Shown here: positions 2,522 to 46,243 of the stretch, piece after piece
Position numbering within the stretch: the first letter of the stretch is position 1
Layout of the letters: each line of letters begins with the position of its first letter
Origin: Selaginella moellendorffii
Taxonomy: Eukaryota; Plantae; Lycopodiophyta
Direction of reading: 5' to 3'
Assembly: GCF_000143415.4 (NCBI RefSeq)
Contig: NW_003314429.1
Coordinates: 141,193 to 205,192, forward strand
DNA: 64,000 bases
Made by a program: the position numbers and the translations under genes
Notes under the pieces: model-generated
Databases searched by the model: none
What the model saw: the letters and a program-made list of their open reading frames with translations, nothing else
What the model was told of the DNA's origin: nothing

Positions 2522-2530
2522 TATATAAAA
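2522..2530 (+). promoter_or_regulatory. TATA box of H1-A
   Basis: TATATAAAA ~65 bp upstream of ATG 2591. Copy B has TATTTAAA at the equivalent position (~31676). Confidence 0.6.
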
Positions 2531-2590
2531 GCCCCTGGTGATCAGGACTATGAATCAATCAGTGCTCCATATTTACAAAAGAGAGTGTCA

Positions 2591-2841: not shown

Positions 2842-3097
2842 GCCAATCAAGCACCAAGAAACAAAAGCATAAATAAATTCCTCTTAAATCACTAAATCGA
2901 CAAAGCTTTCTTTCTCAATGTTTTTGACCTAGTGCGTTGGTATTGATATCAGCTATTTTAAACTCTGTCAGGCAACACTTTTTCTTCCCAGGAGCATTTT
3001 GGATTTAAAAGCTGCATTTATCGTTCATTACATAATGAGTCTGAACTCGCAGATATCCAAACACTCTTAGCTTCTAGTCAATGATCATAATTTCCCT

Positions 3098-6040: not shown

Positions 6041-6406
6041 TGTTGTAGTCTGTGAGTCGAGCACACTGCTTGGTCTGCTTAAATAAGCGGGAAGAAGCTG
6101 CCTGCTTTGACTCTTTGAAGGATGCGTAGAGAGTTCGGAAATTCGATGTGTCTTAGAGCTTTTGGATGTTCAGGCTAGTTTACGGCGACGGCCAATGATC
6201 TCGCAATCCACGCGGGGCTCGTAGAGAGTTTCAAGGTCAGTGTGTATCATTGACTGGCGTCGCAGGATCGTCGAACTTGCTTTTTTCGTCAAGTCGTCTT
6301 TACCAAGACTTTTTTTGTTACTGTGTCAAAGGATGTGCGTCCACGATAGCCTGAAACAAAACATAAAAAAAAAAAAAAATCAGTAGGAGAAGTTTCGACT
6401 GTACTT

Positions 6407-7236
6407 TCAAGGGAAATCCACGTCCTTTTGGGCCAAGAGAAGCTCAAAACGAGGAACGAGAAGTACTCTTCCATGTCCTTTAACACTCGCTACTTCGTGC
6501 CTGGGTTGAAAAAAAAACGGCACAAAATTAGAGAGACTGTCCTCAGCGAAGATCTTTCCTTCCCATGGAGGATGGATGGATACAACACATCCGACCTGTA
6601 CATCGGGAGAAAGGCTGTCGAAAATAGCGGTGGCAGCTTCAAAGGTCTCCAAAACCTCGCACTTTGTGGATGTGAGATGTGCCTCAGGCGACGATTTCTC
6701 GAGCACTCGTAAAGTGAGAGAACCATCTAAAGCAAGGAACCATGATCATGTCGAAGAGAACAAAACAGGGAAAGACATACCAGCTGGTTTCATGTCTGAG
6801 CTCAAGTGATTGTGGCGCCCTCCCAGTTGTGCCAAGAGCGCTTCAAACCTTTACGAATCAAAGAAACGTCAGATGTTAAGGACGGCATGGAAGAGCCACT
6901 GACTTAGACTTTGACGAGGTTTCTGCCGGAAGATCACCGCCGTCGCTGCTAAACTCTTGAAGCTCTTGCACAGAAAGCTTGGTCAAGGATGCATCCTAGA
7001 AAAACAATCAGTGAGAGGAGAAGAAAGAGAAGGGCCAGGCTATGTCTCGTTACCTCGGACGTGGTATCACTTTCGATCGGATCAAGGCTAGAATCCACCC
7101 TGGAAGAGAATGATCGCTAGAAATGAAGAATAGAATCACTGGAAATGCAGCTACCTCGTGCTTGCCTTGCGCCCAACATCGTCGTCGTCGTCGGCATCTG
7201 AGATTCCATCCTCCAGCTCCAGTGGCCGTCGCGGGC
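6407..7236 (-). pseudogene. Unknown multi-exon gene X, copy A (start codon deleted)
   Basis: Exons separated by ~55-bp GT-AG introns join in frame (ELEDGISDADDDDDVGRK / DASLTKLSVQELQEF / FEALLAQLGG / DGSLTLRVLEKS...VSIHPPW / HEVASVKG..DFP*). A 6-bp deletion at 7236/7237 relative to copy B removes the ATG, and an in-frame TAA lies just upstream. Confidence 0.55.
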
Positions 7237-9459
7237 TGCCCCGGGTTTAAACGAGAATATGGCGTGGCTGTTGTTTAAGTAGTTCTGACATATCATGAAC
7301 CGTTGGATGAATTCTAGCACATAGACTTTTATAGGTCGGCATGTTGTCTTTGTTCAGGTACACAGAAAGCATCAGCTCGTAGATGAGATGACACAGTTTG
7401 CGACGATTTTTCCTTGGTTTGAATGGATGTCAGGACAATCTTGGTGACCACAACCATGGCAGGCCAAAAGCCATTTGACCTACATTCCCAGGAAGGGAGA
7501 TGAAGTGATTGTAATGGTTAAATATATATGAACATTCCCCAATGTCCCATAGGGATTGTTAGTGTTGTCATCAAGAAACTAATCTAATGATGCATACCTA
7601 TTGCAGCCAACCACAACAAAAACATCAAGAGTGCAAACACCACTGCCCTCAACCTCCAGCCAAAGCTGACCATATGTAGGTGAGGTACTAGCCTTGGGGA
7701 TATCCTTGCTGTGATGCTTTATTTCTTGATCATGGAATTCTTGTATAAGTTCCTCCCTCCAAAATCTATTTTAATCCCTGTTGAAGCATAGTCACTACCG
7801 TGACTTGTGAAAGCAAGGAGTATATAAGTATTGTATCCCTATACATGTGTGTGTCTACTGTATATTCTGTCCTAACATGGTCTTAGAGGATTAAGGGCAA
7901 TTTGTAAGTGATGGGAAAGTATAGTGGATTTGAGGGATTTTTGTCTAATTGTTGAGAGGAAGCTGAAAAAGAAGAAGGTTCTTGGGTTACTCACTTGAAA
8001 GGAGCAGCCACCATCAAGGCTGAATGAAATAGATCATGGTTTAAGTAGGCTAAGTTGCCAAGTCATCCTAGACATATTCAAGCATCATCAGTCTTTGGAG
8101 GAATGGCCATATAACTAATAAGCTTACTAGACTATACAAATTTATAATTCTATATAGACTTTGAATTTAGTGAGTGTAACACATGTTTAATCCCATTACA
8201 GATAGCCAAGGGTATCCATGACATACTAGTTTGTTATGTTAATGTTGAGAAGGGAGCCTCTCAACAGCGGGAAAAACACTCTATCATACTCTAAAATCCA
8301 ATTCTCCATTGTTTGAATATTCTAGGGTATGGGCACAGGGGTATATTCCCCATTTTTTAGGGCAGAGAGTTCACAAAGAGATATTTTTATATTTTAGAGA
8401 ATCTTGCTCAACTCTAACCATCTAAAGAATGCATTAACTCTGTTGCACGTGAGAACGCAAGGCTTAAGTATTGGTGTAGACTCCAATATGATGTCCTGTG
8501 TTAACAACTGTTGTGAGGAAAAAAGACTAAAGAAAAATGAAGAAAAAAGAAGATGAAGAAAAAAGAAAGTGTAGAGTTCTGGAGTTAAAAGGAAACCATA
8601 TGGGAGAAGTTGACAAAAGAACTAGATACTAAAACAAAAAGAGATAAAATGGAGAAAAAACAAGTGAAAATAAGAGAAAACCTCTAAAAAAAACCTTAAA
8701 CCTCTAAAAAAAACAGCATGGAAGAACAGAGTCATCAAGGATGCATCCTAGAAAAAGACCTCATTACCTCGCACTCGATTTTGTTACGGTTTAAGGTTTA
8801 TTGGCAATCACTAGAATTCATGGTCGATGAAGTGAGTGACAAGCGTGGCCGCTGTGCTGTTGTTTGTACCAACATTCTCCTACTCACTTACAAGCACAGG
8901 AGCCATAAATCTTGGGATGTTGGCCAGGTTTTTAGCCTTCCAAACATTATTCTTTTATTGTATTTATGTTTTCGAAACATGAGAAAGTATAAATCAGCAG
9001 AGAAGGTTTGGATTTCGAGTCATGAGATGGTAGGCTTATCCCAGCCGAAAACTTCCGGGTAGTGGTTGCCTACATATATCCGATGCAAGTAAAAGTTTTT
9101 TTGAGTCTTCTTAGACAAACATATCTTTCTTTTTTAGTTTAGACTTTATTCTACTAAGGTTGAGTGGGGATTACAAATTTGAGTGGTTTCCAAAAACACA
9201 GGCAATGGGAAATTGCTACAACAAATAACGACGTACTATACTATTGGTTGATTTAACCGGTGAATTATCTCTTTTAGCCTTTTTCTTTCCCAACAGTATC
9301 AAAGAGGGTATTTGTAATGCATGTGATTATGGTACTGTCACCGTAGATCCTTGGAACCTTGGGGGATAAATAGGGATAAAATAGCCACTAAAGGCTCTCT
9401 CATTAAGCAATTACCCCTTTTTCAGTTGGTTTAAGGGGAGAGAGATAATGTGCGTTACA

Positions 9460-10490
9460 TGGTATCAAAGCAAATGGTATGGGTTCGATTCCCATTGATT
9501 AGTATTTACATTGATTAGTGGTTACTTAAAAGTTTAATATACCCTTGAGCAAGGTATTCCTACCCGAAATCATATGTATTGAGCATCCATGCATACGTCT
9601 TTCTTCTTGTGTGAAGTATCCACGGACAAAGGTATCCATCGTGTGCCGAAATCATATGTATTAAGCATCCATGTGTACATCTTTCCTTTTGTGTGAAGTA
9701 TCTACGGACGAAGGTATCCACCGCGTGACTACCACACACGGGTGTTACCTCACATGGAATAGCTAGTTTACACAATAGAAAGATTGGTGAAGTATCTATA
9801 GACGAAGGTATCCACCGTGTGACTACCACACACGGGTGTTACCTCATATGGAATAGCTAATTTATACAATAGAAAGATTGGTAGATTGGATTGAATTGGA
9901 GGTGTTAGTTTCCCTTGGCTCAATAGGGGTTATTAATCAAAAGTTACCAAGATACTGGATTGGTAGATTTAGTGCGGAAATGGAGTCAATAGTTACCCTC
10001 TTATGTGAAGTATCCATGGACGAAAGTATCCACCATGGGACTATGGTACATGTGACTACCACACACGAGTGTTGCCTATTGGATTGGATTGGAGGTGCTG
10101 GTTCCCCTTGGTTCAATAGAGGTTGTTAATCAAAAGTTACCAAGATACCGGATTGGTAGATTTAATGCAGAAATGGAGGTGTTAGCTTAGTAGAGGTTGT
10201 TAGTCAATAGTTACCCTCTTGTGTGAATTATCCATGGATGAAGGTATCCACCGTGGGATTACAGTACATATGACTACCACACACGGGTGTTGCCTCACAT
10301 GGAATAGCTTGTCTACACAATGGAAGGATTAGTAGATTGGATTGAATTAAAGGTGTTGGTTCTCCTTGGCTCAGTAAGGGTTGTTAATTAATAGTTACCA
10401 AGATACTAAATTCGTAGATTTAGTGTGGAAATGGAGGTGTTAATTCCCTTTAGCTCAGTAGAGGTTGTTAGTCAATAGTTACTAAAATAC
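9460..10490 (+). repeat. Degenerate tandem repeat array downstream of a tRNA-iMet-type PBS-like motif (probable LTR-element remnant)
   Basis: ...TTACA followed by TGGTATCAAAGC at 9460. Recurring modules GTGACTACCACACACGGGTGTT, GATTGGTAGATTGGATTG and CCCCTTGGCTCAATAGGGG. No second LTR found. Confidence 0.6.
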
Positions 10491-11071
10491 CAAAGAACCA
10501 CAAAGGCCCTTGGATGCCCAAATGCTTGATTTTGCTTTGGGACAAGATCATGGCATACCTACCTCAAGTGAGCAGTCGGAGTGGGGCAGGGAATAAGAAA
10601 ACTAAAAGATAATGGGAGGATAGATAGAAAGCCCACCTCTTTGTGCATACATATATATAATGAAATCAAAAGTAACTTTGTCAAATTGTCCAGTCTCAAA
10701 AATTTCAAATGGGGCTCTTCCATCCATTGGTTGTCCTTAGGAAAATGCACAGACACATTCAGTTTCCACAGCATCTTCAGCATTCACTGAGCAAAGCCAC
10801 TCAGATGAGGTGCACAAAATTTGTCTAAGAATCAAGTACAATCACTTGATCACCTATTCCAAAAGAATAAAAAACAGAAAAAAGAATGAAACAAGTACAA
10901 TTCGAGACATACTGCTCCAGTAAGTCTCTTAAGACATAAAGCATAAAGGATCATTCGTACTCTGCTGGGCACCTGGAGTATCTGAAGCCTGTCATGGGGA
11001 GAATAGTATGCATGACCCAGTAGCAACCTCAAATCTCTATAAATTTGCAAGTTTAGGGTTGTCATTTTAGA

Positions 11072-11944
11072 ATGGGGCGCAAGGATTTGGCGGAGCCTGG
11101 CACCGGATGGAAGCCCTTCCCGCCGCGTTTTGGGGAATGGATTGTGAACGTCGACAAGGTGAGGTCACACCTTGGTTTGAAGCATTCTTCTTCGTGGGTG
11201 AAGAAGCCTTTTGCGAGAATAGCAAAAGCTTGGTTGGGTTTGTCCGATTGGGATTTTGCTGTTGAGGAAGCTGCAGAGATTCTGGGAAGGGATGACCAGG
11301 GCAACAAGGCCGTCCTTATTGGGGAGGGCTTGTGTTGCCTCACAGTCGCAGAAGAAGAAGAAGTTCCCTCCACCAAGATTTACAAGGCTGGAGACAAGAT
11401 CAGGCTTGTGTTTCCTTTCCTCAAGGAAGGAAGGAAGGAGGTGGAGGGGATCATCCTTTCACCCGCGTGCACCGAGGGCCCAGGGACGATGGTGGCAGAC
11501 ATGGCGGTCAAGGCTTTCCCATCTTACTGCGTGGGGTTTGGAGATTGGGAGCCCAAGTTGTATCGGTCCACGCGGCTGGAGGTCAACACCCTCCAGGTTC
11601 TACTCCACTGCAATATGAGGGATGAGGTTGTGGCGAGGCTCGGCTACCCGGACAATGATCGTGTGAAGGCGTGGCCGGTGGATGTGAACGCTCCTGCCTC
11701 GCATGGAGATGCTGTTATCGCGTTCTCCTGCAACGAGTTTGGGCTGAGTGGCACCAGCCTTGCAATTGGGTCGCAAGGCACGTATACCACTTTCCCCTGG
11801 TTCGGGGCCATCCATGACAGGCTTCAGATACTCCAGGTGCCTGAGACTAGGGAGGCGTTGAAGGCATCTGGTTATCCGATCCCAGCAGAGTACGAAGGGA
11901 CCACATGGCGAGAGCCAGAAGTATTTGGTTTTGATAGTGACTAA
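11072..11944 (+). CDS. Intronless 290-aa protein of unknown function
   Basis: ATG-initiated, GC-richer than its flanks, globular-looking composition, AATAAA at ~11980. No family recognised. Confidence 0.65.
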   Translation: MGRKDLAEPGTGWKPFPPRFGEWIVNVDKVRSHLGLKHSSSWVKKPFARIAKAWLGLSDWDFAVEEAAEILGRDDQGNKAVLIGEGLCCLTVAEEEEVPSTKIYKAGDKIRLVFPFLKEGRKEVEGIILSPACTEGPGTMVADMAVKAFPSYCVGFGDWEPKLYRSTRLEVNTLQVLLHCNMRDEVVARLGYPDNDRVKAWPVDVNAPASHGDAVIAFSCNEFGLSGTSLAIGSQGTYTTFPWFGAIHDRLQILQVPETREALKASGYPIPAEYEGTTWREPEVFGFDSD

Positions 11945-14249
11945 ATCACACTAGGGGGTATGTGCATTCCTGGTTTTTACAATAAAGAATTAATTTTTAT
12001 GTACTTGGCGGGGAGCTGGCGGAGAAGCAGTGGCGGTTTCAACAGCAGCAGGATCAAGGTGTTAAGTTGCCAACAATTTCTCGGCAGGCACAAGACCAGG
12101 AGCTCTTGGGAGGAGCCTTCTTAGGTGGCGGAGCTTGTCAAGGTTCGCGGCAGCAAGTATCCAGGACTGCCAGATGTCCTTTCGTTCTTGTCATGTTGGT
12201 TGTGTTGTTTGAGCGGGTCAAGCTCACCATTCCCGGACGATCCGAGCATCACTGCCCACATAGCATGGGATTGATCGGTAGGTTTTTTCCTTCGCTTGGT
12301 AATCATCTCCGAATCGAAGCGTGGTTTTTCTCAATTGCAAACCTGGTGAGGACGACAATCCTTTTTTCCCCGCTGGCGTGTTTGCGTCCGGGAGTTTGCA
12401 CCACATCTGGTGGTAGCTTTTTGCGTGTGTCCTCTATGGGTCCTCTCTCTGTCCATGAATTGCACAAGATCCTGCAAGTTTTCCGAGTCTCTAAAAAAAC
12501 GTTTAAGTGGTGAATACTACCATATGCATCTTCTGGTGAATGGCGGGCAAGGACACAGTGAGGATAACCTTCGTCTTCTGGCAGGTATTCATGACGTGCA
12601 AACCTTCTTTCCTCATTGTAGATCTAAAACCAACAGCAAAGAGTGACGCCACAAATGATATCAAACATCAAACACCGATTGAGTGTTGTCTTAGTTCAGC
12701 CATTGAGGTGGATTAACCTGCTAATCTCCCACCATTCCCAAAATTAAGAGAAAATCCTTGAGAGGCGTTGCAGGCAGCTGGTTATCCAATCCCAGCAGAG
12801 TACGCTGAGAGGTTTTTGACCTCCTCAATAACCCATATTAGAATGTATATAAACAATACTGTAGCTTAAATTAATTTTCTATTTCTTTAACAGAAATTAC
12901 TATTATTAATATTATGGTTTGTTTGATCCGAGGGAGTTGGCTGAGAAGTGGCAGAACGATGCAGAAGAAGGAAGACCCCTGCTGGGCGGCTAGAGCAAGG
13001 TAGTCTCGGTTTTGCGTTATGAATTGCTTGCTTTGCTCCAGCAGAATGTCAAAAGCGTGGAGATTGAATATGTTCTAGACATATCTCCCTTCGGGCCATG
13101 GATTTGTGGAGTTCCAGCGGATTTTTGACAAATTCAATCGTCTAGAGGAAGAGGCAGGGACTTCCATTTTTAGAAGCTACAATTTTTGTGTTGCATTGGA
13201 TGAGATGATCTGCATTTCTCGGAACTCATAGGTAGTTTTTTCTCGGCTCTGAAATTATGCATGTCTCTGCAGGGAAAGCGGAAAAGTTGCCATTTCATTT
13301 GCTTCGACGGGAATTCCAAATACTCTACTGCCTGAAACATGCAAGGTTTGTGGACGTTTTCCTGCTTCATTCGCTTTCCTTTTGAGTACTTCACAGGTTT
13401 GAAGAGTAGCAGCAGAAAAGCAACATGGTTGCTGCGGTAAATGAAAGAAACTTACATGTTTTTTTGCGAATTGCCTAAGCTTTTACATACGTTTCCGAAG
13501 AAACGAAAGCGCAGGCCGAGAAAGATTCTCGCACAAAGAAAGTCGACTTCAAGTTTTGATGGAAATAGAAACTTATAAAAAATGGTTTTGGGAAGATATG
13601 GAGCTCCTCTGTTGCATAGCCCTTTGTTTCTTTCCAGGCCAACGAACCAAAGCCACCTGCTGAACTGACCGTGAACATTGTGCTGCATTTTGGAGAACTA
13701 CCTCCCAGGGCCTTGCAGCCATACACTGGCTTGGAGTTCATGATCCCTTTCTCAATCGAGGTTCCAGCTCCAGCTCCGGCTCCAGTCCCAAAGGAGGGTG
13801 TGGTACCGGTAAAGTGCCTAACTAAGCATTAGAGTACGTACGCAACTCGGACATTGATAGTGAGCAAACTGTGCAAGGATTGAAGCTTGCATGAAGTCCA
13901 GCGGCGGAGTATCAGCTTCACGACCCCAAAGAAGGTACTTGCCAGTTTCTTCTCGCTTTTGTGGTACTCGACTATTCCAGATGAGCTACTGGAGCTCCAA
14001 AACCAACCGAGAATTCTTAGTGCCAATTGCTTGGCAGTGTCTTGAGTTGCCAACAGTCACCGGCAAGGGAAAAAAAACTGAGAAAAGTGAGCCTCTAGCT
14101 GTAAACTCCCCAAGATTGGACTCCCGATACAACTGGAAGAATTCATATGGAAGTTTATGAGTGTCAAAAATCATAGATCATAAAGCTTACGAGTACGTTT
14201 TATATACTTTACAAAGTCTGGCTCGTTCTCTAATCCTTGTAATGTCTCC

Positions 14250-14406
14250 AGGACCCCAGCCGGTAATGAAACTCCCAATGCAATCAACCTTCAAAAGGCA
14301 AAACGTAGCGAACCAGATATCAGGCTATATCAGGACTCCAGCCGGTAATGAAACTCCCAATGCAATCAACCTTCAAAAGGCAAAACGTAGCGAACCAGAT
14401 ATCAGG
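14250..14406 (+). repeat. ~80-bp tandem duplication specific to copy A
   Basis: CCAGCCGGTAATGAAACTCCC...GAACCAGATATCAGG occurs twice here and once in B (~51575-51658). Confidence 0.9.
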
Positions 14407-16605
14407 CTGTCATTGACCTTCTTATGTATGTATGCTTACTGTTTTGTCTTTTTACAGGTTTTAAAGGAAAAGAAAGAAAGTGCTCAAGCAGAAATTTTTG
14501 TGGGAAATACTGGGGGTTGGCAAAAAGAGAGCCAAGTCAACGCAGTTGACTAAAGAATATTCTGTTACACTTAAAGAGTACTTTTTGAATATGCTAAGAA
14601 TATCCTTTTATAATGAAAATATTTCCTCATTATAATTATACTACAACTATAATTTATATTGTATATTATTTAATATCAGATATATTATTATAACTACAAT
14701 AATTTATATCTCAAATCTATACATATAGAAGAACTAATTTGCTTTCTTCTTCTCTCTCACCTTTTTTGTTTTTCTCTTTTCTTCTCTCATGCATGATTAT
14801 CAATGAGTTTTGATATGAAAGCTAACTTTTACTTAATGTGCATGTTATAATGTTTTGGATGCCTCTTCATAAACTTAGTTACAACCTTCATGTGGGGTGG
14901 CATATCATCAGGAACTTTCTTCATAATAATACACTAAATTATTGCATAATGCCAAGATCACAATCTAATCCAAAAGCATTATGACTATTGTGTCAAGCAA
15001 CAAATAAAAAGCCTCTATGCCACTAAAGAAATCAAGGATACAACCACCTTCACGGCAAAAGTGTTGCATAACCATGTTTGCTAAAGTTTTTGACTTTTGT
15101 GAAAGAGGTTGCCTATAAAGAATATTAAAAGTATTTTCTTGTTAAAAAAAATGACTTACTAAGTTTTGCATTCAATGTGATCTATGGCAATATTGGCTGA
15201 TTTATATTGGAAGAGAGTTGATGAAAAGTTCAAAAGCAAAGCCACTTTTTCTTTTGCTTTTATTGTCTTGGGGAATAATAACATTGAAATAACTTTGATC
15301 TATACTGCAAAATCAATTATTAATCAGGAAATAAAAGAACTTTAAACATACCTACTTCTTGCCTCTGAAGCCTGTTTGTGACTTTGGTATGTAGTCTTCA
15401 GTTAGGATAAAATGAGCTTGAGAAAACACTTCTGCCATCTCAACTATCTATCCAAAAAGTTAAATACCAACTGAAAGTCCCATAAAATTCTTTTGCAAGA
15501 GTAACACCAGAATAAAACTAAGTTGAATTATTATCATCATATTTCTGGAAAACTTATTTTAAATCCTTCTTCCTAGCTTGGATTTGAAATTCAAGCACTC
15601 ATGCTCATATCCCAATGGGAGAAATTTAGGTAAACTTCTTTATCTGAGGCTTATAGACTTTGCCTTGCAGCAGAGAATGGACATTAGATTCTTCTATCCA
15701 GCCTAACCCTAGTTATAATGCTTAAGAGAAGAAACAACTTATGCCTTTGCTTGAAGATTAACAATAGACAGAAATTTCATTTGTCCCATAGAGTTTACTC
15801 ATTCCTAATAGTAGCTAGCCTTTTGAGCTAGTCTTGGTAAAAAGTAGTATGAAATACTAGAGTGTTCCATCCATTGTAATTGTGGATGAAATCCCTAAAA
15901 TGTACCCAAAGAATGGTAGAACCAGCAATAAGTGCATCCATTTGGAGTGAGAAAACAATAAAATGAAGAGAAATGGAAACTTTAGTATATTGTTCTTTTG
16001 CAAACTTCATATCAGGATTTTTATTTCAGCAGGTATGCAACCCTCTGCTATTCTTGAATAAAGGCTCCCTATAGCCCTAGAAATGTGTGAAACAAAGAAA
16101 AAATTAAGACATTGAATAAGAAAGAAAAGAAGGATTAAATGCACATGTGCGCGCATGCACACACACACACACATATGGCAATCATGATCTTTTGTATATG
16201 CACAATCCTCTTAAGTGCTTTAAAATCAAATTGAAGTTTCAATATCTAAAATCAGTTTGACATGTGGGTTGGTGTTTAGAAGTCTTTATGGTCCGATTAT
16301 AAGCATATTTGAAAATAATATTCTGAAAATGGAAATATATGATGCTGCCAATAGCACTTTTAAATGAAGAAGTACTAAAGAAAAAGCAATATAAATATTT
16401 AACTTTTGTTAAACTAGTAGCAAAACATAATAAAAATAATAATTATAGATATATATTTTAGCATGGAAGGAAGAGTCAAATTGAAAACATGGTTAAATAT
16501 TATACACAAAATCATAAGTAAAAATAATGTTCATTCTTTATTAATAAGAAGTAAGTTTTTCACTAAATCTTATAGAGAACATAAATAATTTAGATGCAAC
16601 AGCAC

Positions 16606-16866
16606 TCTCAAGGGAAATTCACATCCTTTCAAGCTAAGAGAAGCTCAAAGACGAATAAAAAATACTCGTCCATGAGGATCATGAGGTGTCCTCCTAGCTG
16701 TCCCAAGACATATTGTGCTCAAATTGGAGTTCCATGCACCTGAGGAGTATAGCAATGGATCATATCAAATATAAGCTCTTGGAAGATGAGGATAGAATCA
16801 ACAAGGTTTAGTCTTAAGAGGGCATTTCAAACCTCTATAAAAAAGACAGCATGGAAGAGTCATTTA
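16606..16866 (-). pseudogene. Decayed relic of gene X
   Basis: TCAAGGGAAATTCACATCCTTT..AAGAGAAGCTCAAA resembles 6407-6449. TTCAAACCT..GACAGCATGGAAGAG resembles 6842-6895. Confidence 0.55.
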
Positions 16867-19800
16867 CAGAGTCATACTTAGTTTTGTTAGGGTTTAGGGT
16901 TTATTGGCGGCCATTCTCACGATGGAATTCATGGTCAACAAAGTGAGTGACAAGCATGGCTGCTATGCTATCATCTGTACCAACATTCTCCTACTCACTA
17001 GCCATAGATCTTAGGGGTGTTTAGCCTTCCAGGCAGGATACATGGTGGCTTACATCTATTCCAAAGGTAGGCTTATGGGGATCTTTCCCAATGACAATGA
17101 AGTTGCGAGACTGGGAATGTCAACCATGAGCATGTTGTGATCCAAGCTCGACCTTTTTTGCTTGACGGTATGATTTAAAACAAGAAAAAATAGAAGAACT
17201 TCTCGAAACCAATAACCATTCATTTTCAAGTAAGCATTTACGTTTTTCATCTTTCTCTCAGTCGTATCAAATTTTGGATCATCATCTTCCAGTCACTCAT
17301 GCAATAGGACCATTATCCACATCTTTTCTCACCTTCTTAGTGGTAGTATTTCAGCATCACTACCTTCAACCTAACAAGGCTTGAAGGATCCAAGATCCCA
17401 TTTTGCTATGATGGATCAAGAGTCTTGTGTCCAAGGATCATTGCCTTAATTTCTTNNNNNNNNNNNNNNNNNNNNNNNNNNNNNNNNNNNNNNNNNNNNN
17501 NNNNNNNNNNNNNNNNNNNNNNNNNNNNNNNNNNNNNNNNNNNNNNNNNNNNNNNGAAAATGACAGAGTAATTAAATTAGGTTGTTTCATAATAGACTAT
17601 TTATATTATAATTGTGTATGTGAGAATAACATTGTTGGCAACAAAGTGAGTTGTTACACAATATTCATAAATAAATATATAATAATTAAAAATATTTTTT
17701 AAAAATTAATTGAAATTTTTATTACAAAATAGTCGTTCAATAACATAATATAATGTCTCATTCTTGACCTGTTTTAATTTTTGAGGATGCTATGTGTCAT
17801 TAGAAACCCCATAAATTCCATCTATAATAACCAAATATTAAATAAAATTTACAAACCCAAACATATCCCCATTTATAATATCATTAATATAAAATAATTA
17901 TTGAAAAAAAGTATAAATTAAAAAAGTTACAAGAAAAATTACTTATAAAATGACCTATAGGACAATTTTCTTTGCTAGATATATTTTAACTAATTTATTT
18001 ATTTATAAAAGTTTTACAAATAATGTTCAATAATAAATTTATTAAGAAATATAATTATTGGTAGAATATATATATTATATATATAATATATATAACTATT
18101 ATGGTTTAATATAATTTTTTAAAAGTATTCTAGAAAATCTTCAATCATTTTTAAAATGTGTAACACTTATTAACTATAAGGAACATATAATACTCTTATA
18201 CTTACTTTCTTAACACTATATTTAATTTATCTTCCCACTAGCATGAAACTAATTCTATATCTATTAATGTTGGGAAAACTAAGTTTTACATGTTTAATTA
18301 TAAAAATAGAACTGAATATATTTAAATAAAATTCATTGTGAAATTTAGTTTTAATTGATTTCAATTTAGTTTTCCCAGAATTTTACATTTTATATATGAA
18401 ATTAAATGGCACTTTTATACTTTAATTACATTGAAAAATTTACAATTAAAAACTTTTTAATATATTTAGATAAAAAATTTTATGAATAGTTGATTGAACA
18501 AAGTAAATTAATAGTAAATATTTTGTGAATTTTTTTAATTAAATTTACTTTTAGTTATTTTATTAGTATAATTCTTCTTTTGTCAACTATTGGAAAAAAG
18601 ATGAACTAAAAAGTACTTTCTAATTATGTTTTAAATATATTTTATATTTAGTTATTTTTGTAAAATTCTAATTCTTCAAAATCTTAGCTCTAGATCTAAT
18701 AACAATGCAAGTACAATAAGTTAATTATCCTTTTGGAAAAGAACTAAGCTATATTAATTTAAATTATTATATCTTAAAAAATAACAAGTAATTAGCACTT
18801 TCTCTTTTTGACCCAAAATAAATAGAAATTTTAAAACATATTGTCAACATTCCAAGAAGAAGGAAATATGGTTATGAAAAAAAATGAAAAAAGGATAACT
18901 GAATTTATCCTCTATTTTTTATGTGAAAAAAAAGTTTGCACTATATATGATATCAAAGTTAATAGATGGGTTTTATTTGAGAAAAAAAAACTCCCAAGCA
19001 TACATCCAAGAAGTAAAAATATAGGAGCATGAAGTGACAATAAAATAATTCTAAAGCATCTAACATCCCACTAATATATAAACCAAAGTTAAATATAATT
19101 TAGTGCTATTTCAACATACATAATGTAAATATATAAATATTCCACCAACTAATATGGTATGGAGGTTAGGTTTATACCTAAGCTGAATATAAAACAAATA
19201 TAAACATCCCTAACAAGAAGCTAAACAATATTTCTAAACCCGATTTATCCCCTTATATGAAAGCATGCTTTGAGCCCAGTTCTAAGAGTGAGTCTCCAAG
19301 ATAATTATGAAATGTTACTAAATATAGATTGGTGTTAGATTATGAATCTAAAAATAATATCATCATGTTCAAAAAAATCTTTATATTCCATAGATATGCC
19401 TTATGAGTAAATTTAGACACTATCTATAAATATTCAATAGGATTAAAATAAGATTAGCATATAGCAAGAGTCTCTTAGTAGATATAGTAAGTTATTATGT
19501 AGTGATATTAAGGTACTAAAGCTCAATATGCAAGAGTTTTTATCATTAATTAATGAAAGATATAACAAAATAGAAATTCTTTATTAGGTTATGTTTATTT
19601 ACGTAATAACACAAAAAAATTCTATCTATATACTCGTCCAGTTTAAATACACTTGAAATGCCAGTTAACTCCACTAGCACAAAAGGGATTAATAAAGGGT
19701 TTAACATTACCAATCCCCTGCCTAAAGAAGAATATTTGGAATGACTTGTTAACAAAATTTTTTTGATACCCATAATTTTATTTACGACAATTAAAGTTTT

Positions 19801-20870
19801 TAAGATATATGTAAAGAGTTTACAATAGCCTTCAAAAAATATAACAATGAATAAGTAGTCAAGAAAATTTCTCACTAATATGAGAATCTATTTAAAGCAC
19901 TATTGAATTAGATATCACTTATCACAATATAGTCAAAAGGACCTTCAACTATTATAAATATACATTTGTTGTTAGAGAGAGTTACATGTATTTTACCACA
20001 AAAATTATAAAAGTACTTACCCAACAAGATATATCACTAATTGATTGTCATGCTGCTGTATCCTTTAGAGTTGCAAGATCTATTATACTTTTAAGACCAT
20101 AAATTTAAAACGTATATTAATTAATATTAATTATATTAAAGCATATCCAAAAAGTATAGCTTATCAAGCAAACCATCATAATATAAATTCTAGTAATTTC
20201 TCCACAAGATAGATGCTGTGCAAATAATGTGCTATATTATAGTTAAATATATTATCTTTAAGGTTAGTTTATGAAATGATTATTGCAGTTGAGTTGGATT
20301 CAAGTGGTCATTTAGTTCATGCTTATCCATGAACCTTTATCTTATATCTGGGGTATTACATTCATATTGGATAAGTATATGACTCGATGGCATATTTGAG
20401 GTCTATCTGGTATGATTTGTGTTGTGCAATTTTCTAATTTTTCTTTTCCTTTTGCTTTTATGGTGAAGGGTGGACAATTCTCTGCATCATGTAAAAATGT
20501 AAGGCTGTGGTATAAAGCAGAATTATGGGCAGATTGTCCTCCTAGCAAAAAATCAAGTTTCATAATTTTAAATGATCATATCTCAAATGGTAATGGACAA
20601 TTGAAACCTGGGGCTGGTTATTTTTTCTAGATGTAGACTCTTCAGGCTAATAGTAATGGATATCATTTTATCAAATGTAAAACAACAGTAGTAGTACTAC
20701 TGACCCAAAATGAACAACAGGACTTGGAGCATACTGTGAGAATTTTAAGAAGAAAGAAGAGTGGTTAACTATAAATCTTGATGAGTTCATTGAAAATAAT
20801 CAGGGTAAATTAAAGTGGGTGGTTGTATAATTACATAATATTTTAATTTGTTTTTTATGTTTCTAGGAGA

Positions 20871-21143
20871 TTAGATGGTGGTGCATGCCAGAACGTTGGT
20901 GGAGTCTGTCTGCTGGCAGCAAACAGGAGTCCCTCCGCACTCGCTACCCACATTTACCGCACAATTTGCAGCATTGACAGTCACAAGTGTACCAGGAGGT
21001 GCAGCAGGGAAATTCGAGCAGCAGTAAGAAGTGGAATCATTTCCACAAGTTTGGTTGCCCTGTCCCAAGGCAGGATTGAGAAAGAGAGCAGCACTCAGGG
21101 CCAAGAATGTGGCAATAAGCTTAATTGAAGAAGAAGAAGCCAT
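20871..21143 (-). CDS. Hydrophobin-like secreted 8-Cys protein H2-A (90 aa)
   Basis: ATG 21143, signal peptide (IKLIATFLALSAALFLNPALG), then C-x7-CC-x18-C-x7-C-x5-CC-x10-C-x3-stop. Intronless. Confidence 0.85.
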   Translation of the reverse strand: MASSSSIKLIATFLALSAALFLNPALGQGNQTCGNDSTSYCCSNFPAAPPGTLVTVNAANCAVNVGSECGGTPVCCQQTDSTNVLACTTI

Positions 21144-21715
21144 GGTTGTAAGAGCAGCTGAATGAGAATGGGTTTGTCTCTTTGGACGCTTAGAATTTAT
21201 TGAGTTAAGATTGTCCTTCTTCGAGGGTGTAAGTTGTATGATCGTCCTTTTGTTCATTCATGCAATTAACTAGAGATTCCCTAAACCTGATACACACGAA
21301 GCTCATGTGAGAGCTCCTAAAGTGGACCTTATACTGCCAACTTAATTATCTTCCAAGAACATTTGTAACTAATACAGCTAGTTTTGAAGCTTATAGAAAA
21401 GACTCAACTGTCAGTCAAGAAGGCCACATCTACCAAAAAATGTCAACAGGACGCCACAAAGAACTTAACTGGCCTATAGGGGTCAGCAGGACAATGTCTT
21501 TAAATTACAGCTCTGGATTCCGAGAGCTCAAAGCACCATCGAAACACAAGGTAACAATCCCAGCTCCTAGGGGAACCTAGAAAGAACAACCCAACAACTA
21601 TCACCACCCAATCATAGGAGTCTTAATGGAATTTGAAGAGTCAGTGAAGGGAATTCAGCAATTTTGTGGTTTTCTTTTCTCATGGGAACCTCCTTCTGGT
21701 TTTTGTTTAGAGCAT

Positions 21716-29049: not shown

Positions 29050-31430
29050 ATGGCTGTGGTGCCGGCGGCTCGCAATTCGCCGTTTTTCTCGAGAGAAAGC
29101 CACCGGGCGAGAGGCTATGGCGCTTCGAGCACCAGCGACGAAGGAATGCACGGAAGGACTTTCACAAAAACAAGCAGCAGTGGCTCAGAGGATCAAAAAA
29201 TTCTCAGCTGGAACAAGATCAAACAAGAGGAGGACAAGAGGAAAAAGGAGATGGTGCTGGAGCTCATTGCTGCATTGAAGGCGGCGAGCGGCTCAAGAGC
29301 GATCGAGAGGGGAAGGCAGCTCCATGCCGCAGCGGTTGAGAGTGGCAACGGTTCCAACTTCTACGTTGCGAGCTCTCTCGTGAGCATGTACGCGAGATGT
29401 GGCTGCATGGGCGAGGCTCGCTCGGTGTTTGATGCCAACCACGATGTGGTTCTCTGGACAGCGCTCATGCTCGGCTACTCCAAGAACGGCCAGGGAGAAG
29501 TGACTTTGGAGCTCTTCTCGCGGATGCTGCTCGTCGCAGGCCGAATTCTCAGACGTTTCTGGCTGTGCTCAAGGGCCTTTCGCGCTTGGCTGCCAGGGAG
29601 GAAGGCAGGAGATTCGGTGGAAAGGTGGTGAAGACAAGGACTCTGGAAAGAGTCATGGCTGTCCACTTGCAAGCCGAGGGATTTGGATACGAGCTGGATA
29701 ACTTTGTGGCGAGCTCGCTGGTGGACATTTATGCCAGGTGTGGGAGCATGAGGGATGCTCGCAGAGTTTTCGATCGAATGCCGAGCCACAACTTGGTGGT
29801 CTGGACGGCATTGATCCTGGGCTATGCTACGAACGGGGAGAATGAGGTTGGCCTCAGGCTCTTCGCTCGGATGCTTGGCGAAGAAGAAGGACGCAGGACA
29901 GATTCGCAGGCTTTTGTTGCTGCGCTCAAAGCTTGCACGGGGCTGACGGACAGAGAGGTGGCAAACGACTCAGGTGTAAAGATCCAGTGCTTGGAGAAAG
30001 GCATGGCTGTGCATCGTGAAGCTGCCAAGAGTGGAGTTGCAACGGAGATGTTCGTGGGAAGTGTCCTGGTGGATACATACGCGAAGTGCGGAAGCATGGA
30101 GGACTCCCGCATCGTGTTTGAGAAGATGGTGGCTCAGGACGTGGTCTCGTGGACCGCTCTCCTGTCACAGAATGGCGAGAGCGAGCTGACCCTTCGGATG
30201 TTTGAGAGAATGAAAGCCTCGGGATGTGCACCGAATGCTCAGACGTTCGTGGCAGTTCTTCACGCGTGCACGAACTTGGCTCTGCGAGAGGACAGCATTG
30301 AAGAGGACGGCAAAGTTCTCAAGGTGAAAGCTCTGGAGAAAGGCATGGCTGTTCATCGGGAAGCGTTCAAGGCCGGGTTTGAGCCGGACATCTGTGTGAG
30401 CAGCACGCTGGTGGATATGTACTCCAAGTGCGGCAGCGTCCTCCAGGCTCGCCGGGTGTTTGACAGGATGAAGCGCCACGATGTGGTGTCATGGACAGCG
30501 CTCATACTCGGCTGTGCTCAAAACGACGAGGGAGATATGGCACTGGAGCTCTTCACAAAGATGAGGCTTGAAGAGAAACGTTGCCAGCCCGACGATCAGA
30601 CGTTCGTTGCCGTGCTGAAGGCCTGCTCCACAGTTGCATCGCTCGAGTTTGGAAAGAAGATCCATGCAGATATATGCCGGTGTGGACTCGAGGCTGGCAG
30701 GCTTGTCACGAACTCGGTGGTGGATTTCTACGGCAAGTGCGGGAGCATGGTCGTGGCTCACCAGGTTTTCGATTCCGCTAGAACAAGAGCCCGGGATATA
30801 ATCTCGTGGAACTCGCTCATCACAGGCTACAGCCGCCACGGTGAAACCGACGCCGTCCTCGAGCTCTTTGCAAGGATGGTGGAAGAAGGCTTCCAACCGG
30901 ATGGCATCACCACACTGGCGGTCTTGAACGCGTGCTGCCATGCCGGGCTGGTTGAAAGAGGGAGGAAGCTCTTCCAGGAGATGTGCTCCCGGAAGGCTGC
31001 AAGCGTGACTATGGAGCACTACCACGTCATGGTGGACATGCTAGGCCGGGCAAACAAACTCCAGGAGGCGGTGGAGATGGCGGACTCGATGCCTTTCGCA
31101 GCGAATGTGGTGACTTGGACCATCGTGCTGAGCTCGTGTCACAAGTGGAAGAGCTTGGAATTTGGAAGGCTGGCGTTTGAGGCACTGGTGAAGCTGGATG
31201 AGAAGCAGGCTGCTACTTACGTTCTCATGGCCAACATCTATGGAAGCTTGGGCATGGTTGAGGAGAAAGCTAGAGTTCATGCGATGAGCAGGAAGATTGG
31301 CGCGTGGAAGAAGCCCGGATCAAAGCTATCCAGTGGTCAAATCAGTCTCGATTCGTTTGTCAATTGTGGTGATCATCCTCAAAAGGAAGATTCCCAAGAA
31401 AAACTTATGACTGACAGACTTGTAAATTAA
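29050..31430 (+). pseudogene. PLS-E PPR gene, copy B, frameshifted
   Basis: ATG 29050 with an Arg/Ser-rich presequence-like N-terminus. A 1-bp deletion at ~29538 (GTCGCAGG vs GTCGCAAGG in A) splits the ORF; small in-frame indels also present. Confidence 0.9.
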
Positions 31431-31714
31431 AAAGTCCTTGGCAACTGGCCATTTTGTGACACTCACACTCAAGCATCACCTTCAAACCTCTCATGCTTGC
31501 AGTGAAGCTTTGGAAGTAAACGATTGAAATGAGCTGGAACACTTCAACAAATGGAACACTGTCAGTCAAGTTGAGCTCGCGGATGGCATGACCAAATGGC
31601 GTGCATTCATGAATCAGCTAAAGCTGCAAAGGTGACAATGTTGAAGAAGTCATCTGATCATACAAGCCAGCCCTTATTTAAAGACCCTCTTAACTCCAGG
31701 AAAGGAACAGTGAA

Positions 31715-31978
31715 ATGGCTTCCTCTACTCAGCTTGTTCTTGCGTTCTTTGTCCTGGCAGCATGCCTTACGCACACTGCATCCGCAGAAACAGAAGTATG
31801 TAACAAGGGTACCACACTCTGTTGCAACGACATTGACGCTTCTGAAGGAATTCCTGTAGAGATTGACGCAGACATTCTCAAGTGCTTTAATGTTGTCGCT
31901 GTGAATCAGTGCTCCAACACTGTAGTCTGTTGCGAGGAGCAGAAAGCCGGGATCTTTGTTGGGTGTGTTGCTATATAG
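31715..31978 (+). CDS. Hydrophobin-like secreted 8-Cys protein H1-B (87 aa)
   Basis: Signal peptide (..HTASA/ET), then C-x6-CC-x19-C-x8-C-x5-CC-x10-C-x3-stop, within class I hydrophobin spacing. Intronless. Confidence 0.88.
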   Translation: MASSTQLVLAFFVLAACLTHTASAETEVCNKGTTLCCNDIDASEGIPVEIDADILKCFNVVAVNQCSNTVVCCEEQKAGIFVGCVAI

Positions 31979-32071
31979 GCAAAAGCGGCAAGAAACAAAA
32001 GCATAAAATCAATTTCTTTAAATAAATAAAGCTGTTTGTAATCAGGCAGAAAAAACACGATTTATAAACAT

Positions 32072-34966
32072 CTAAATACCCCCGCCGCCGCCGCCGCCGC
32101 CGGCCCCCCCGCCACCGCCACCACAACCACCGCCTCCACCACCTCCTCCTCCGCCACACCCACCACCTCCTCCTCCGCCACACCCACCACCACCGCCTCC
32201 GCCACCTCCTCCACAACCTCCTCCTCCCCCTCCGCCACCTCCTCCACAACCTCCTCCTCCCCCTCCGCCACCTCCTGCTCCACCACATCCCCCACCTCCG
32301 CTGATGCCACACCCGCCTCCGCCACCACCACCTCCACCACCTCCGTCATACCAGCACTGGCCATCACCGCAAAAACAATCATCACCGCAAAAACAATCAT
32401 CACCGCCACCGTCCCCGTCCTCTCCGCCTCCGCCTCCGTCCTTGCGGCGATCAACTGTCACAGCACCTGGTCAAGCAGCAATGTTCTTAGAATTTGCGTG
32501 CAAAGAAACTTGTTTCTCACCCCAATGATCTTCTTCTTCTTCTGAGACGATCACTCGTTTACTCGTCTTCGTCCACGAAGGAATGGCTTTGCCGAGCATA
32601 TCCGACACGGACATGCTTATGGTTGCCGATAAAAGAAGCACAAGCAGCACATCCTCATTGCGATCAATCTGAGACAAATCAAATCACAAAACTGGAAGTA
32701 AGTTTCGATTAAAGTCTACCTGCATGCCACCAGATCGCCAGTTGAAAAGAGCTGTCGCCTTGCCTTGAGGAGCGTCTCTTGTGAATCTTACCATTGTCAC
32801 AAACCACGCTTCCTGTCGCTCGGATGCACCAGGAACAGCAAATTCCAGGTGACGCCCCGAGAAGAGCATGATCTACAATCAAGTTTTCCAGAGAATCAGC
32901 CACTATATCAGAGAATCTGTACCACTATATATGCAGACTAACTCACCGGACAGTCGTGGGATTTCATTTCAACGCGGAGCTGTGGTTTCATGTTCCAGTG
33001 CTTATCCTTGACATCTCTGCTAACAGTTAAAGTAGCCTTCCCGTTCATTAGAGACCATCTCCTAGACACTGAAGATGGTTTCTCTAGTTGCCACGCAGAT
33101 CCTAGAATTTCACCTGAGAAAACAAAGCAACACTATAAATCTTTTGCAAAACATGTCCAGAAGATGCTCATACCATTTACGGAGCCAGTGTTGTAAGAAC
33201 CGTCGTATGTCCACCCTCCTTTGTGAACATGGATAACTTTATCGGTGTCGAGAATGCTCCTTAGCAAAAGCCCCCCACCCTTGTATCTAAAGCAAAAGTT
33301 GCCACATTAGTTCTAGAAAAAGTGGCTCAATTTGCAAACCTGCAACGGTGTGGTCGAAAACATTCCTTGTTATCCACATGCCTTCTCTGTGACTGTGGAG
33401 GCTGTGAGTGGCACAGTCGTCTCCCGTGTCTCTCACTCTCACGCTTCTGAAGAGATAAGGCGCAGTGACTGGAGGAGTAACGGAGATGTAAACCAGCACC
33501 GACACTTCTCGGTCCTTCTTTGTCTCCAGCAATGGAAACCAGCCGCTGAGTGATTGCGTTTCCGAGCGGATGACAGTTTTCCATGGAATCAGGAGCAGGC
33601 CCACGGTTTTGGATATCAAAAAGCGCTTCTGTCGAACTGCGAGCACCAGCCCTTCGGTGGAGAGTTCAGCTGTTATGGTTGAGACTACGCTCAGATGAGA
33701 GGAAGCCTTCCCTCGTTGGCTCTCGAGATTCAGATACTTTTGATGGTTTAACGAGCTTATCACGTAGTAGATGGTCCTATCGTCTGGCAAACCTCTGGTA
33801 CCTCTTACGGAGAGATGAACCTGCATAAATCGAATAGAATCGGATCAGACGAGATTGACAATAAGACTGCGAACTCCAATACCTGAATGGTCTTTCGCTC
33901 AGCCAAGTCATAATCGTTTTTACTAGCGAGCCTGGCGAGCTTGGCTGGATCATAAGCACGTGTTCCGGGAATGGATGCTGGTGGCTCCCCTCTATACATG
34001 CACCCTGCTTTCTCGTATGGAAGGCCATACGTGTCTTCCCACATAGATCGAGTCTTTGTGAATCCATTGTCCAGTTTTCCTCCGGAATCTCGGTTGCTAT
34101 CTGTGTCGTCATGCTCGAAGATCCTTCCCAGTACCTGTGTGAGATCGTTGTGGTAGCTCACAGGGTGAAGCTGATGTGTATGCCATATTAAATCGATGTC
34201 GTAAGTGGGAACGAAAAATGTTGATGTGCCAGACGTGCGTACGAGATGGAGAAACGCCTTGTAACGTGCAACAGCAGCTACCAAGAAGCTCTCGTCCAGG
34301 TAATGCGGCTCAGAAACCTGCGTACTCAAAGTTAATTTGCTTCCAAGGAAAGATCATCACTTGCCTGATAGTAGAAACTTTTCTGCCTGAGAGCTGCTTC
34401 TGCCAAGTCATAAAAGATATTGGTTGGTCTTTCGGTATATCGCGTAAATGTCAAGAGTGTATGGTTCGTCTGGAAAATTCGAAGCCCATGTACTGGCGCT
34501 TTGTTGGAGATCATTTGTGTGCCTCGCCAAAGAAGGTCCGTCCACAATTTTACCGAACAATCTCTTACAGTCGTCAGCATATTGAACCTAGTCAGACACG
34601 TAACTTTAGTAGATTGAAGTGGACAGATAATGAATAGCCACACTCACAGGATTCAAGCGATGGCAATGCCATATCCAGCCGCAGTCGAGTGGCGGGACAA
34701 AAGTCCCAGAAGAATTTGCTAGCAGCGGAAGGCAGCAGTACTGGTACCTAGAATCCAAGAAGAAATCAGCAAACTAGATCAAACAAGTAAATATCTCACC
34801 TCTCAATTGCCCTTTCCAGAACAGGCCTCTCAAACAGCTTGAAATTGGCATGTACCAGCGAAAGGAACTCCAACTGTGATTTTGCAGCTGCTACCACATC
34901 CAGAGAGAGCGTAATTTCTTGAGCCTTGAGCCAATCATTCACTTGATTCACGGAAAGCGAAGCCAT
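32072..34966 (-). pseudogene. GRDP: GRDP (DUF1399) gene, copy B, two exonic frameshifts
   Basis: Relative to A: a 17-bp deletion at ~34443 and a 22-bp deletion at ~33348, both in coding exons. Confidence 0.85.
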
Positions 34967-35335
34967 TGTTGTAGTCTGTGAGTCGAGCACATTGCTTGGT
35001 CTGCTTAAATAAGCGGGAAGAAGCTGCCTGCTTTGACTCTTCGAAGGATGCGTAGAGAGTTCGGAAATTCGATGTGTCTTAGAGCTTTTGGATGTTCAGG
35101 CTAGTTGACGGCGACGGCCAATGATCTCGCAATCCGGCTCGTAGAGAGTTTCAAGGTCAGTGTGTATCATTGACTGGCGTGGCAGGATCGTCGAACTTGC
35201 TTTTTTCGTCAAGTCGTCTTTACCAAGACTTTTTTTGTTACTGTGTCAAAGGACGTGCGTTCACGTTAGCCTGAAACAAAACATAAAAAAAAAAATAAAA
35301 AAAAAAAACCAGCAGGAGAAGTTTCGACTGTACTT

Positions 35336-36173
35336 TCAAGGGAAATCCACGTCCTTTTGGGCCAAGAGAAGCTCAAAACGAGGAACGAGAAGTTCTCTTC
35401 CATGTCCTTTAACACTCGCTACTTCGTGCCTGGGTTGAAAATAAAAACGGCACAAAATTAGAGAGACTGTCCTCAGCGAAGATCTTTCCTTCCCATGGAG
35501 GATGGATGGATACAACACATCCGACCTGTACATCGGGAGAAAGGCTGTCGAAAATAGCGGTGACAGCTTCGAAGGTCTCCAAAACCTCGCACTTTGTGGA
35601 TGTGAGATGTGCCTCAGGCGACGATTTCTCGAGCACTCGTACAGTGAGAGAACCATCTAAAGCAAGGAACCATGATCATGTCGAAGAGAACAAAACAGGG
35701 AAAGACATACCAGCTGGTTTCATGTCTGAGCTCAAGTGATTGTGGCGCCCTCCCAGTTGTGCCAAGAGTGCTTCAAACCTTTACGAATCAAAGAAACGTC
35801 AGATGTTAAGGACGGCATGGAAGAGCCACTGACTTAAACTTTGACGAGGTTTCTGCCGGAAGATCACCGCCGTCGCTGCTAAACTCTTGAAGCTCTTGCA
35901 CAGAAAGCTTGGTCAAGGATGCATCCTAGAAAAACAATCAATGAGAGGAGAAGAAAGAGAAGGGCCAGGCTATGTCTCGTTACCTCGGACGTGGTATCAC
36001 TATCGATCGGATCAAGGCTAGAATCCACCCTGGAAGAGAATGATCGCTAGAAATGAAGAATAGAATCACTGGAAATGCAGCTACCTCGTGCTTGCCTTGC
36101 GCCCAACATCGTCGTCGTCGTCGGCATCTGAGATTCCATCCTCCAGCTCCAGTGGCCGTCGCGGGCGCTTCAT
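35336..36173 (-). CDS. Unknown multi-exon gene X, copy B (retains ATG)
   Basis: ATG 36173 (MKRPRRPLELEDGISDADDDDD...). Same inferred exon structure as copy A, but the last intron donor reads GG rather than GT. Confidence 0.5.
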
Positions 36174-39100: not shown

Positions 39101-40175
39101 GATTGGATTGAATTGGAGGTGTTAATTCCCCTTGGCTCAATAGGAGTTGTTAATCAAAAGTTACCAAGATACTGTAAGCGACTAAATTTTCCATTCTACT
39201 TTAGTCACTTAACCACACCTCCGACCACTTGGAGGAGTCTCATTCACAACCTCCATAAGTCCAATCCAGGACTTGGGACTTGCTAGCCCCGAGAATGGCA
39301 TCCATGCCACTCAACATTTGCACTTGGTCCAAGTGCTCCACGTGTCCGATCCCATGACCGACACTCAAAGGTACCACCGACATGCCAGCCCGTTACGCTA
39401 AGGCCATGCCCAATCACCTTTGCCACACTGGTAGTCCATTACCACTTGCATCACAGTCTTGGCTCTCCAAGACTAGGCAAACCATCCGTGAGTGGTCATC
39501 TGAGATCCACTCCTTAGCACCCTTAGGATGCCCACCGACAAGGGGAATAGCCTTCCCCAATATCCCTCTGTCAGTCCCCACTAAGTCCCTTTCTGCCCCT
39601 GGCCGTGTTTGCCAATACTGCCACTTGATCGAGACCCACAGGCCCGACCACTAAGTCCCACGGTCCTCTGGGACTTCCTCACCACACGACTGTGTCCTTG
39701 GTCACTACCCCAGAGGACTGCTCCTCTTCCTTTCCACAGTCTGGGCCTTTGGGGCAACATTTCGGAACACCGTGGCCTTACACGAGTCACCTGGGTACTC
39801 TCCTCGCCTTCTGCCCTTAGGTGCTCTAGCCATGGGCTTAGAGCGAGGTTCCGTTGAGCCACGCCTGGTATCCAAGTAGGTAGTGCCACCCACACTTGGA
39901 CTGGGAGCATCAGCCAGTCGATCTCCCGGGGGAACTAGAGCTGGCTCTTGAACACTTCACTAAGCTACCCCGCTTGTTGGTCCGTGTTCACTCTAGTCTT
40001 GGACTTCCCAATGGGCAGCTCATCACCCAACACTGGGTCCGGCCTTCCTGAGCCAAACTGGCCTTTCCTGGCCAAACTGGCTCCACTGCAGTCCTCCCCC
40101 TACTATACTTTTGGAGCTCACCAAACCCCCCAGGGTCTGGGAGACGAACGCTTTGGGCTTTCACCCTCTCAGGCT

Positions 40176-46211: not shown

Positions 46212-46243
<32 letters not shown>

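Follow-up and report, generated by a model that had tools for sequence, protein, structure and literature searches.

Our analysis centres on H2, a small gene in a 64,000-nucleotide stretch of Selaginella moellendorffii DNA (the window). In the reading we favour, H2 is an intact, probably expressed gene for a secreted paralogue of H1, a second small gene in the same window, and the family to which both belong most plausibly goes back to an old transfer from a fungus to a plant, followed by divergence; we put the probability of this reading at roughly one half. Under it, H2 would be a strongly diverged paralogue of H1 in a small, tandemly amplified family, whose best-supported affinity would be with the class I hydrophobins of fungi. 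By self-BLAST, the window holds two copies of one repeat unit, 96-98% identical, in each of which the gene order is a pentatricopeptide repeat (PPR) gene on the plus strand, H1 on the plus strand, a proline-rich open reading frame (ORF), a GRDP gene on the minus strand and, further on, H2 on the minus strand. The features of the window are as follows:

3..21288, no strand: unit copy A of the tandem segmental duplication (self-BLAST)
29109..63481, no strand: unit copy B, lengthened by insertions that include a Ty3/gypsy element at 55269-60266
20871..21143, minus strand: coding sequence of H2-A, 90 codons plus stop, a continuous ORF without an intron
21063..21143, minus strand: predicted signal peptide of H2-A, residues 1-27, cleavage after ALG (rule-based)
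20874..21062, minus strand: mature eight-cysteine domain of H2-A, 63 residues, with the sequons NQT and NDS
21195..21201, minus strand: TATA-like AATAAAT near H2-A, 52-58 nt upstream of the ATG, predicted from sequence only
63076..63351, minus strand: H2-B, the intact twin of H2-A, 91 codons plus stop
31715..31978, plus strand: H1-B, intact paralogue, 87 aa, just short of the cut-off of the Pfam family Hydrophobin
2591..2870, plus strand: H1-A, a diverged, frameshifted paralogue with its final CC...C...AI and stop in another frame
29029-31430, 33287-34329 and 48387-49254: disrupted genes of unit B (PPR gene, GRDP exon and a 290-residue ORF)

An earlier, sequence-only reading of this DNA had described H2 as a signal peptide followed by the pattern C-x7-CC-x18-C-x7-C-x5-CC-x10-C and a final TTI. 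The recomputed ORF and spacing (5, 7, 0, 18, 7, 5, 0, 10, 3) confirm this description, as they do the two N-glycosylation sequons, both of which lie in the mature part, and the lack of an intron, since an assembled 333-nt contig, described below, is collinear with the continuous ORF. The signal peptide is a rule-based call: its n-, h- and c-regions fit, as does the -3/-1 rule (A at -3 and G at -1 before Q28), K8 supplies the basic residue, and the hydrophobic core of 14 residues averages 2.49 on the Kyte-Doolittle scale. The mature protein is acidic (pI 4.05), contains neither Lys nor Arg, and has a GRAVY of 0.02, with aliphatic or aromatic residues at 17 of its 63 positions; residues 22-36 form a moderately hydrophobic stretch, which it would take a structure to judge as a surface patch. 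The residues that follow the cysteine doublets are hydrophilic (mean Kyte-Doolittle values of -0.16 and -2.31). When all six reading frames of the window were scanned with a relaxed form of the hydrophobin cysteine pattern, it matched three times, at H2-A, H2-B and H1-B, against a mean of 0.005 matches per window expected by chance (200 block shuffles). The TATA-like element lies inside about 145 nt of upstream sequence that H2-A and H2-B have in common. A 128-aa version of the ORF, starting from an upstream ATG, was rejected because its extension differs between the two copies. Judged by these features, H2 is a real gene, hydrophobin-patterned, for a predicted secreted protein.

The kinship between H2 and H1 is apparent both inside and outside the cysteines. 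H1-B has the spacing 4, 6, 0, 19, 8, 5, 0, 10, 3 and a mature part of 63 residues, the same length as that of H2, and the two proteins have in common a MASS...-like start of the signal peptide as well as, just as had been reported before, the x5, x10 and x3 spacings and the terminal Ile. In a single BLASTP comparison they were about 29-30% identical (29%, E 3e-5). When the non-cysteine residues were permuted and the cysteines held in place, between 22 and 39 of 5000 shuffles reached the real semi-global score of 63; this score lies 3.2 SD above the cysteine-fixed mean (z 3.2, p about 0.005), so the resemblance between H1 and H2 goes beyond the scaffold, if only by a small margin.

H1 itself has changed rapidly between the two units. 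H1-A and H1-B are 45% identical at the protein level, and H1-A carries a frameshift between C5 and the second CC, so that its end, CC-KEK-C-KAI-stop, lies in another frame. Across the H1 slot (2400-3100 in unit A, 31520-32075 in unit B), there is good conservation of the promoter region, signal peptide and 3' UTR, whereas the part that codes for the mature peptide is heavily diverged and carries indels, in units that are 96-98% identical elsewhere. H1 is rich in acidic residues. These comparisons support the view that H2 is one member of a clustered family, in which no fewer than three diverged types can be told apart: H2, H1-B and the broken H1-A.

The tie of H2 to the fungal hydrophobins is suggestive only, and H1 is the stronger link. 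H1-B aligns with the Hydrophobin family (PF01185) over profile positions 1-79 of 79, at E 3.6e-4 and 21.6 bits, 1.4 bits under the cut-off of 23. H2 reaches 10.8 bits against the same cut-off and 12.0 bits against a cut-off of 27 for Eas (PF22354), and these two are the only Pfam families with E<10 for H2. The best match to H2 among 177,635 sequences of solved structures is the class I hydrophobin EAS of Neurospora crassa (2fmc), at E 0.009 for H2 alone and E 0.0022 with a profile of H1 and H2; the alignment has non-cysteine identities across C1-C7, and the hydrophobins 6e9m and MPG1 are also found in the top 20. Antibody heavy chains, which are plainly unrelated, reach E 0.0083 in the profile search through a GTLVTV...A motif, and since they score nearly as well as EAS, E-values near 0.01 do not discriminate here. 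In a protein-language-model search, the top neighbours of H2 were all hydrophobin clusters (scores 0.82-0.83), while mature H2 alone gave no usable match.

Searches of larger collections returned no relatives. An exhaustive phmmer search of H2 against 1.84 billion representative proteins found no true relative, and no hydrophobin at E<=0.001; its five matches were long tandem-repeat proteins (MBG-domain and similar), which we rejected as spurious because weak matches add up over repeats. A word-index protein search with H2 and H1 gave no scoring candidate, and a metagenome scan with back-translated H1 and H2 motifs yielded 139 pattern matches, none of which was confirmed. Exact look-ups of H2-A, H2-B, H2-C, the longer upstream-ATG versions and H1 in a collection of 15 billion proteins were likewise empty.

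The predicted structures, made by AlphaFold2 from alignments of three or four sequences, contribute little. The H2 model is weak (pLDDT 63.7, pTM 0.45), with predicted strands that carry both doublets and C8, and the H1 model is unusable (pLDDT 44.8); with models of this quality, neither the same nor a different fold for H1 and H2 is shown. When the weak H2 model was compared with the PDB by Foldseek, HFBI, HFBII and EAS stood in the top five rows at non-significant values (E 0.9-3, TM below 0.4), the best row being HFBI (E 0.9, TM 0.39). Against 48,161 chains, VIA-align of the same model peaked at Z 2.1, with no hydrophobin reaching Z 2, and searching the ESM Atlas by shape returned only noise.

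Hydrophobins have been described as exclusive to filamentous fungi (PMC3020181, PMC2253510, PMC3364958), and in fungal genomes they have been defined operationally as small, secreted proteins with eight cysteines, including two doublets (PMC3020181). H2 resembles those of class I in several respects: its eight cysteines follow the order C-CC-C-C-CC-C with two doublets, it is small (90 aa, in a family of about 100 aa) with a predicted signal peptide, and it has both the x5 between C5 and C6 and the hydrophilic residues after the doublets that are traits of that class (PMC3020181). Its loops of 18 residues between C3 and C4 and 7 between C4 and C5 lie at the short edge; comparable fungal proteins, with a C3-C4 loop of 17 and C4-C5 loops of 7-12, have been listed (PMC3020181). 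H2 differs from class I hydrophobins in that its host is a vascular plant rather than a filamentous fungus, in scoring below the gathering thresholds of PF01185 and PF22354, and in being barely hydrophobic, acidic and intronless. Class II hydrophobins (PF06766; HFBI and HFBII of Trichoderma reesei, 2fz6 and 2pl6) have the same cysteine order as H2. However, their quoted spacing of 10, 11, 16, 8, 10 (PMC3020181) is unlike the 7, 18, 7, 5, 10 of H2, the residues after their doublets are hydrophobic where those of H2 are hydrophilic, and their structural matches to the H2 model are the non-significant ones given above (VIA-align Z below 2).

A serious rival, if on balance the less likely one, is that H2 and H1 alike are cysteine-rich secreted peptides peculiar to this plant lineage, perhaps with a signalling or antimicrobial task, whose layout converged on that of the hydrophobins with neither common descent nor a surface-coating role. 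The empty protein and metagenome searches would fit such a peptide, as would the sub-threshold hydrophobin family scores, the antibody matches at similar E-values, the acidic and weakly hydrophobic character of H2, and the failure of its weak model to superpose on hydrophobins. The behaviour of the H1 slot also points this way, as fast divergence of the mature part between conserved flanks is common in plant secreted peptide genes. Convergence of this kind would, however, have to account for the exact doublet-containing eight-cysteine pattern with class I spacing, for the end-to-end match of H1 to PF01185, and for the position of EAS as the top solved-structure match, with identities outside the cysteines. 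Nor does H2 have the layout of the plant eight-cysteine-motif (8CM) proteins. These, such as nsLTP, HyPRP and 2S albumin, are small and secreted, with eight cysteines in four disulfides, and H2 is likewise small, eight-cysteine and predicted to be secreted. Their motif, C...C...CC...CXC...C...C, contains a CXC, whereas H2 lacks a CXC and has two CC doublets, and neither an LTP-type nor any other 8CM or plant peptide family of Pfam was found for H2 even at E<10. What the data show directly is the gene with its copies, the plant host, the cysteine pattern, the features of the signal peptide and a similarity to H1 that exceeds the cysteines; the homology of H2 to fungal hydrophobins is inferred.

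Further copies of H2 were found outside the window. With members of the PPR cluster as anchors, four loci (L001 to L004) were fetched from the public v1 assembly GCA_000143415.2, and three of them hold an intact H2:

L002:3100-3372, scaffold GL377733.1: intact H2 copy that encodes the H2-A protein
L003:1217-1489, scaffold GL377733.1: intact H2 copy that encodes the H2-A protein
L001:8692-8967, scaffold GL377596.1: intact H2 copy that encodes a third variant (E to K, V to A, and an extra Phe)

Locus L003 is identical to the window across 1.3 kb, including the whole H2-A coding sequence. Within the window, the intact twin of H2-A and its three residue differences were both borne out: H2-B has an inserted Phe in the signal peptide and, in the mature part, an A to G and a V to A change. 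H2 is thus intact in all five loci examined, two in the window and three in v1, and none of its three protein variants has lost the frame, the signal peptide or any of the eight cysteines. As for H1, locus L004 (11868-12002, scaffold GL377705.1) has a partial copy of the H1-B type, residues 43-87 only, that ends in CFAI and adjoins a 286-residue PPR fragment. At L003:12061-12321 (GL377733.1) there is an intact H1-B ORF, covered by a 388-residue gene model on the opposite strand (12075-13930) without a Pfam family; this model looks like a mis-call on a proline-rich low-complexity stretch that hides H1.

The v1 annotation has no gene call at any of the H2 loci, and neither H2 nor H1 proteins occur among 153 billion recorded gene positions. 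Small ORFs are routinely skipped by annotation, so the lack of a gene call for H2 says little. Parts of the H2 stretch occur in 10 public runs, two of which, RNA by guess rather than by record, gave contigs. One of them yielded a 238-nt contig identical to H2-A. The other yielded the 333-nt contig, at a depth of 139 in a 25 Mb assembly, which contains the full coding sequence of a further H2 variant. Such a depth in so small an assembly is more what one would expect of cDNA than of genomic DNA. Because the contig ends fall on variant sites, they may reflect breaks in the assembly graph and not the ends of an mRNA. In raw reads of two S. moellendorffii RNA-seq runs, no H2 read was found in the 12% sampled, a sample that is no test of expression. 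Taken on these contigs, transcription of H2 is likely.

Selection among the recent copies is a different matter. Between H2-A and H2-B, 2 of 273 coding sites have changed, each time nonsynonymously; the 3' flank, with 6 changes in 890 sites, has diverged equally fast, so constraint is not evident among them. All three coding substitutions across the three H2 variants are nonsynonymous; these are too few changes for dN/dS to give a selection signal, and H1 and H2 are too diverged for an estimate. The sequence-only reading had also stressed that H2 is the only gene intact in both units, and at the level of ORFs this holds. Frameshifts or stops break up three genes of unit B, namely the PPR gene, the GRDP exon and the 290-residue ORF (the counterpart of ORF 11072), all of which are whole in unit A, so unit B is decaying apart from H1-B and H2-B; in unit A it is H1 that carries a frameshift. 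At the disruption rate of the neighbouring genes, about 0.7 per kb, chance alone would leave an ORF of 273 nt undamaged in about 8 of 10 cases, and the intactness of H2 in both units is therefore not evidence of selection. Of the proposal that H1 and H2 form an old, diversified, clustered family under constraint, the clustering and the diversification into at least three types stand, while the constraint is not borne out by the comparison of copies. The only sign of constraint is a long-term one: H1 and H2, at about 30% identity, have both retained the frame, the signal peptide and the eight cysteines since they split.

With selection this faint among the copies, one could suppose that H2 is an evolutionary relic, its ORF intact only because it is short and the duplications are young, with no functional protein and only incidental transcripts. 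The shared rate of coding sequence and 3' flank, the run of nonsynonymous changes and the high chance of intactness would all agree with a relic, as would the neighbouring H1-A, already broken, the absence of H2 from every annotation and from the recorded gene positions, and the empty RNA samples, for what a 12% sample is worth. We regard this as improbable, since the cysteines, signal peptide and frame persist in five loci and three variants and across the H1/H2 split, the depth-139 contig with its coding sequence comes from a transcriptome-sized assembly, and the missing gene calls carry little weight for an ORF of this size.

The window is plant nuclear DNA. H2 has as neighbours a PLS-class PPR gene with an E motif, a GRDP gene (both identified by Pfam) and Ty3/gypsy elements, and XP_024537307.1 of Selaginella moellendorffii matches the neighbouring PPR protein at 97% identity, across 99% of the length of the latter. 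The suggestion that H2 stems from fungal contamination or from an assembly chimera, for which one could cite that its closest affinities, though weak, are all to fungal families, is effectively refuted. H2 sits inside a plant repeat unit of 20-30 kb and is flanked on either side by PPR and GRDP genes and by plant retrotransposons, an arrangement that an independent assembly repeats on its scaffolds GL377596.1 and GL377733.1. The coding sequence has a GC content of 50% and a GC3 of 0.46, and no fungal protein comes near identity with it.

Several other features of the locus deserve a record. The Ty3/gypsy retrotransposon is present in two copies that are 95.7% identical, at 23853-28862 on the minus strand and 55269-60266 on the plus strand, and they lie at different sites and in opposite orientation in the two units; the copy at 23853-28862 has long gag, protease-RT and integrase ORFs. 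The similarity between units A and B stops about 145 nt upstream of the H2 start codon. Just upstream of H2-A, past this end of the shared unit, lies a direct repeat of 415 bp (21716-22130 and 23122-23536, 98% identical, 1.4 kb apart), which may represent the two LTRs of a small element that inserted beside the H2-A promoter. The units are otherwise collinear around a segment of about 380 bp whose orientation is reversed in one relative to the other (12040-12398 versus 49351-49732). Unit B also has long minisatellite-like arrays, degenerate Ser/Asp-rich and Gly-Leu-His, which occur twice, about 5.9 kb apart (39948-41028 and 45815-46959), with several frames open on both strands.

To return to H2 as a secreted member of a hydrophobin-like family, a possible course of events can be sketched. 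The signal peptide would direct the protein, acidic and open to N-glycosylation, into the secretory path. There its cysteines would pair as in hydrophobins (C1-C6, C2-C5, C3-C4 and C7-C8) and hold a small beta core. The secreted protein might then act at the cell wall or surface as an amphiphile or as a component of a coat. Of these steps, the classical role in a water-repellent coat is the least secure, given the marginal hydropathy of mature H2; near-neutral hydropathy combined with two glycosylation sites makes such a role doubtful. H1, with a GRAVY of 0.45 against 0.02, would be the better candidate for a water-repellent coat; it also differs from H2 in its PF01185 score (21.6 bits against 10.8) and in having no sequons.

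It is tempting to go further, although we do so only tentatively, and to propose that true hydrophobins of old fungal origin are present, expressed and diversified in a lineage of vascular plants, with H2 as a hydrophilic, glycosylated offshoot that serves a plant-specific function at the surface or in the wall. In the literature searched, we found no link between hydrophobins and Selaginella or the lycophytes. If these are true hydrophobins in a plant, the family would no longer be a purely fungal invention, and they would be one of the few clear examples in which a structural surface protein has passed from a fungus to a plant. A plant family that annotation has missed in every copy would also raise the question of how early land plants acquired surface-active proteins, and of how many genes for small secreted proteins are absent from plant gene sets. 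Within this picture H2 has a more limited value: it reveals a family that is diversified and present in several copies, not one insertion, and it marks how far the sequence can drift while the scaffold is kept.
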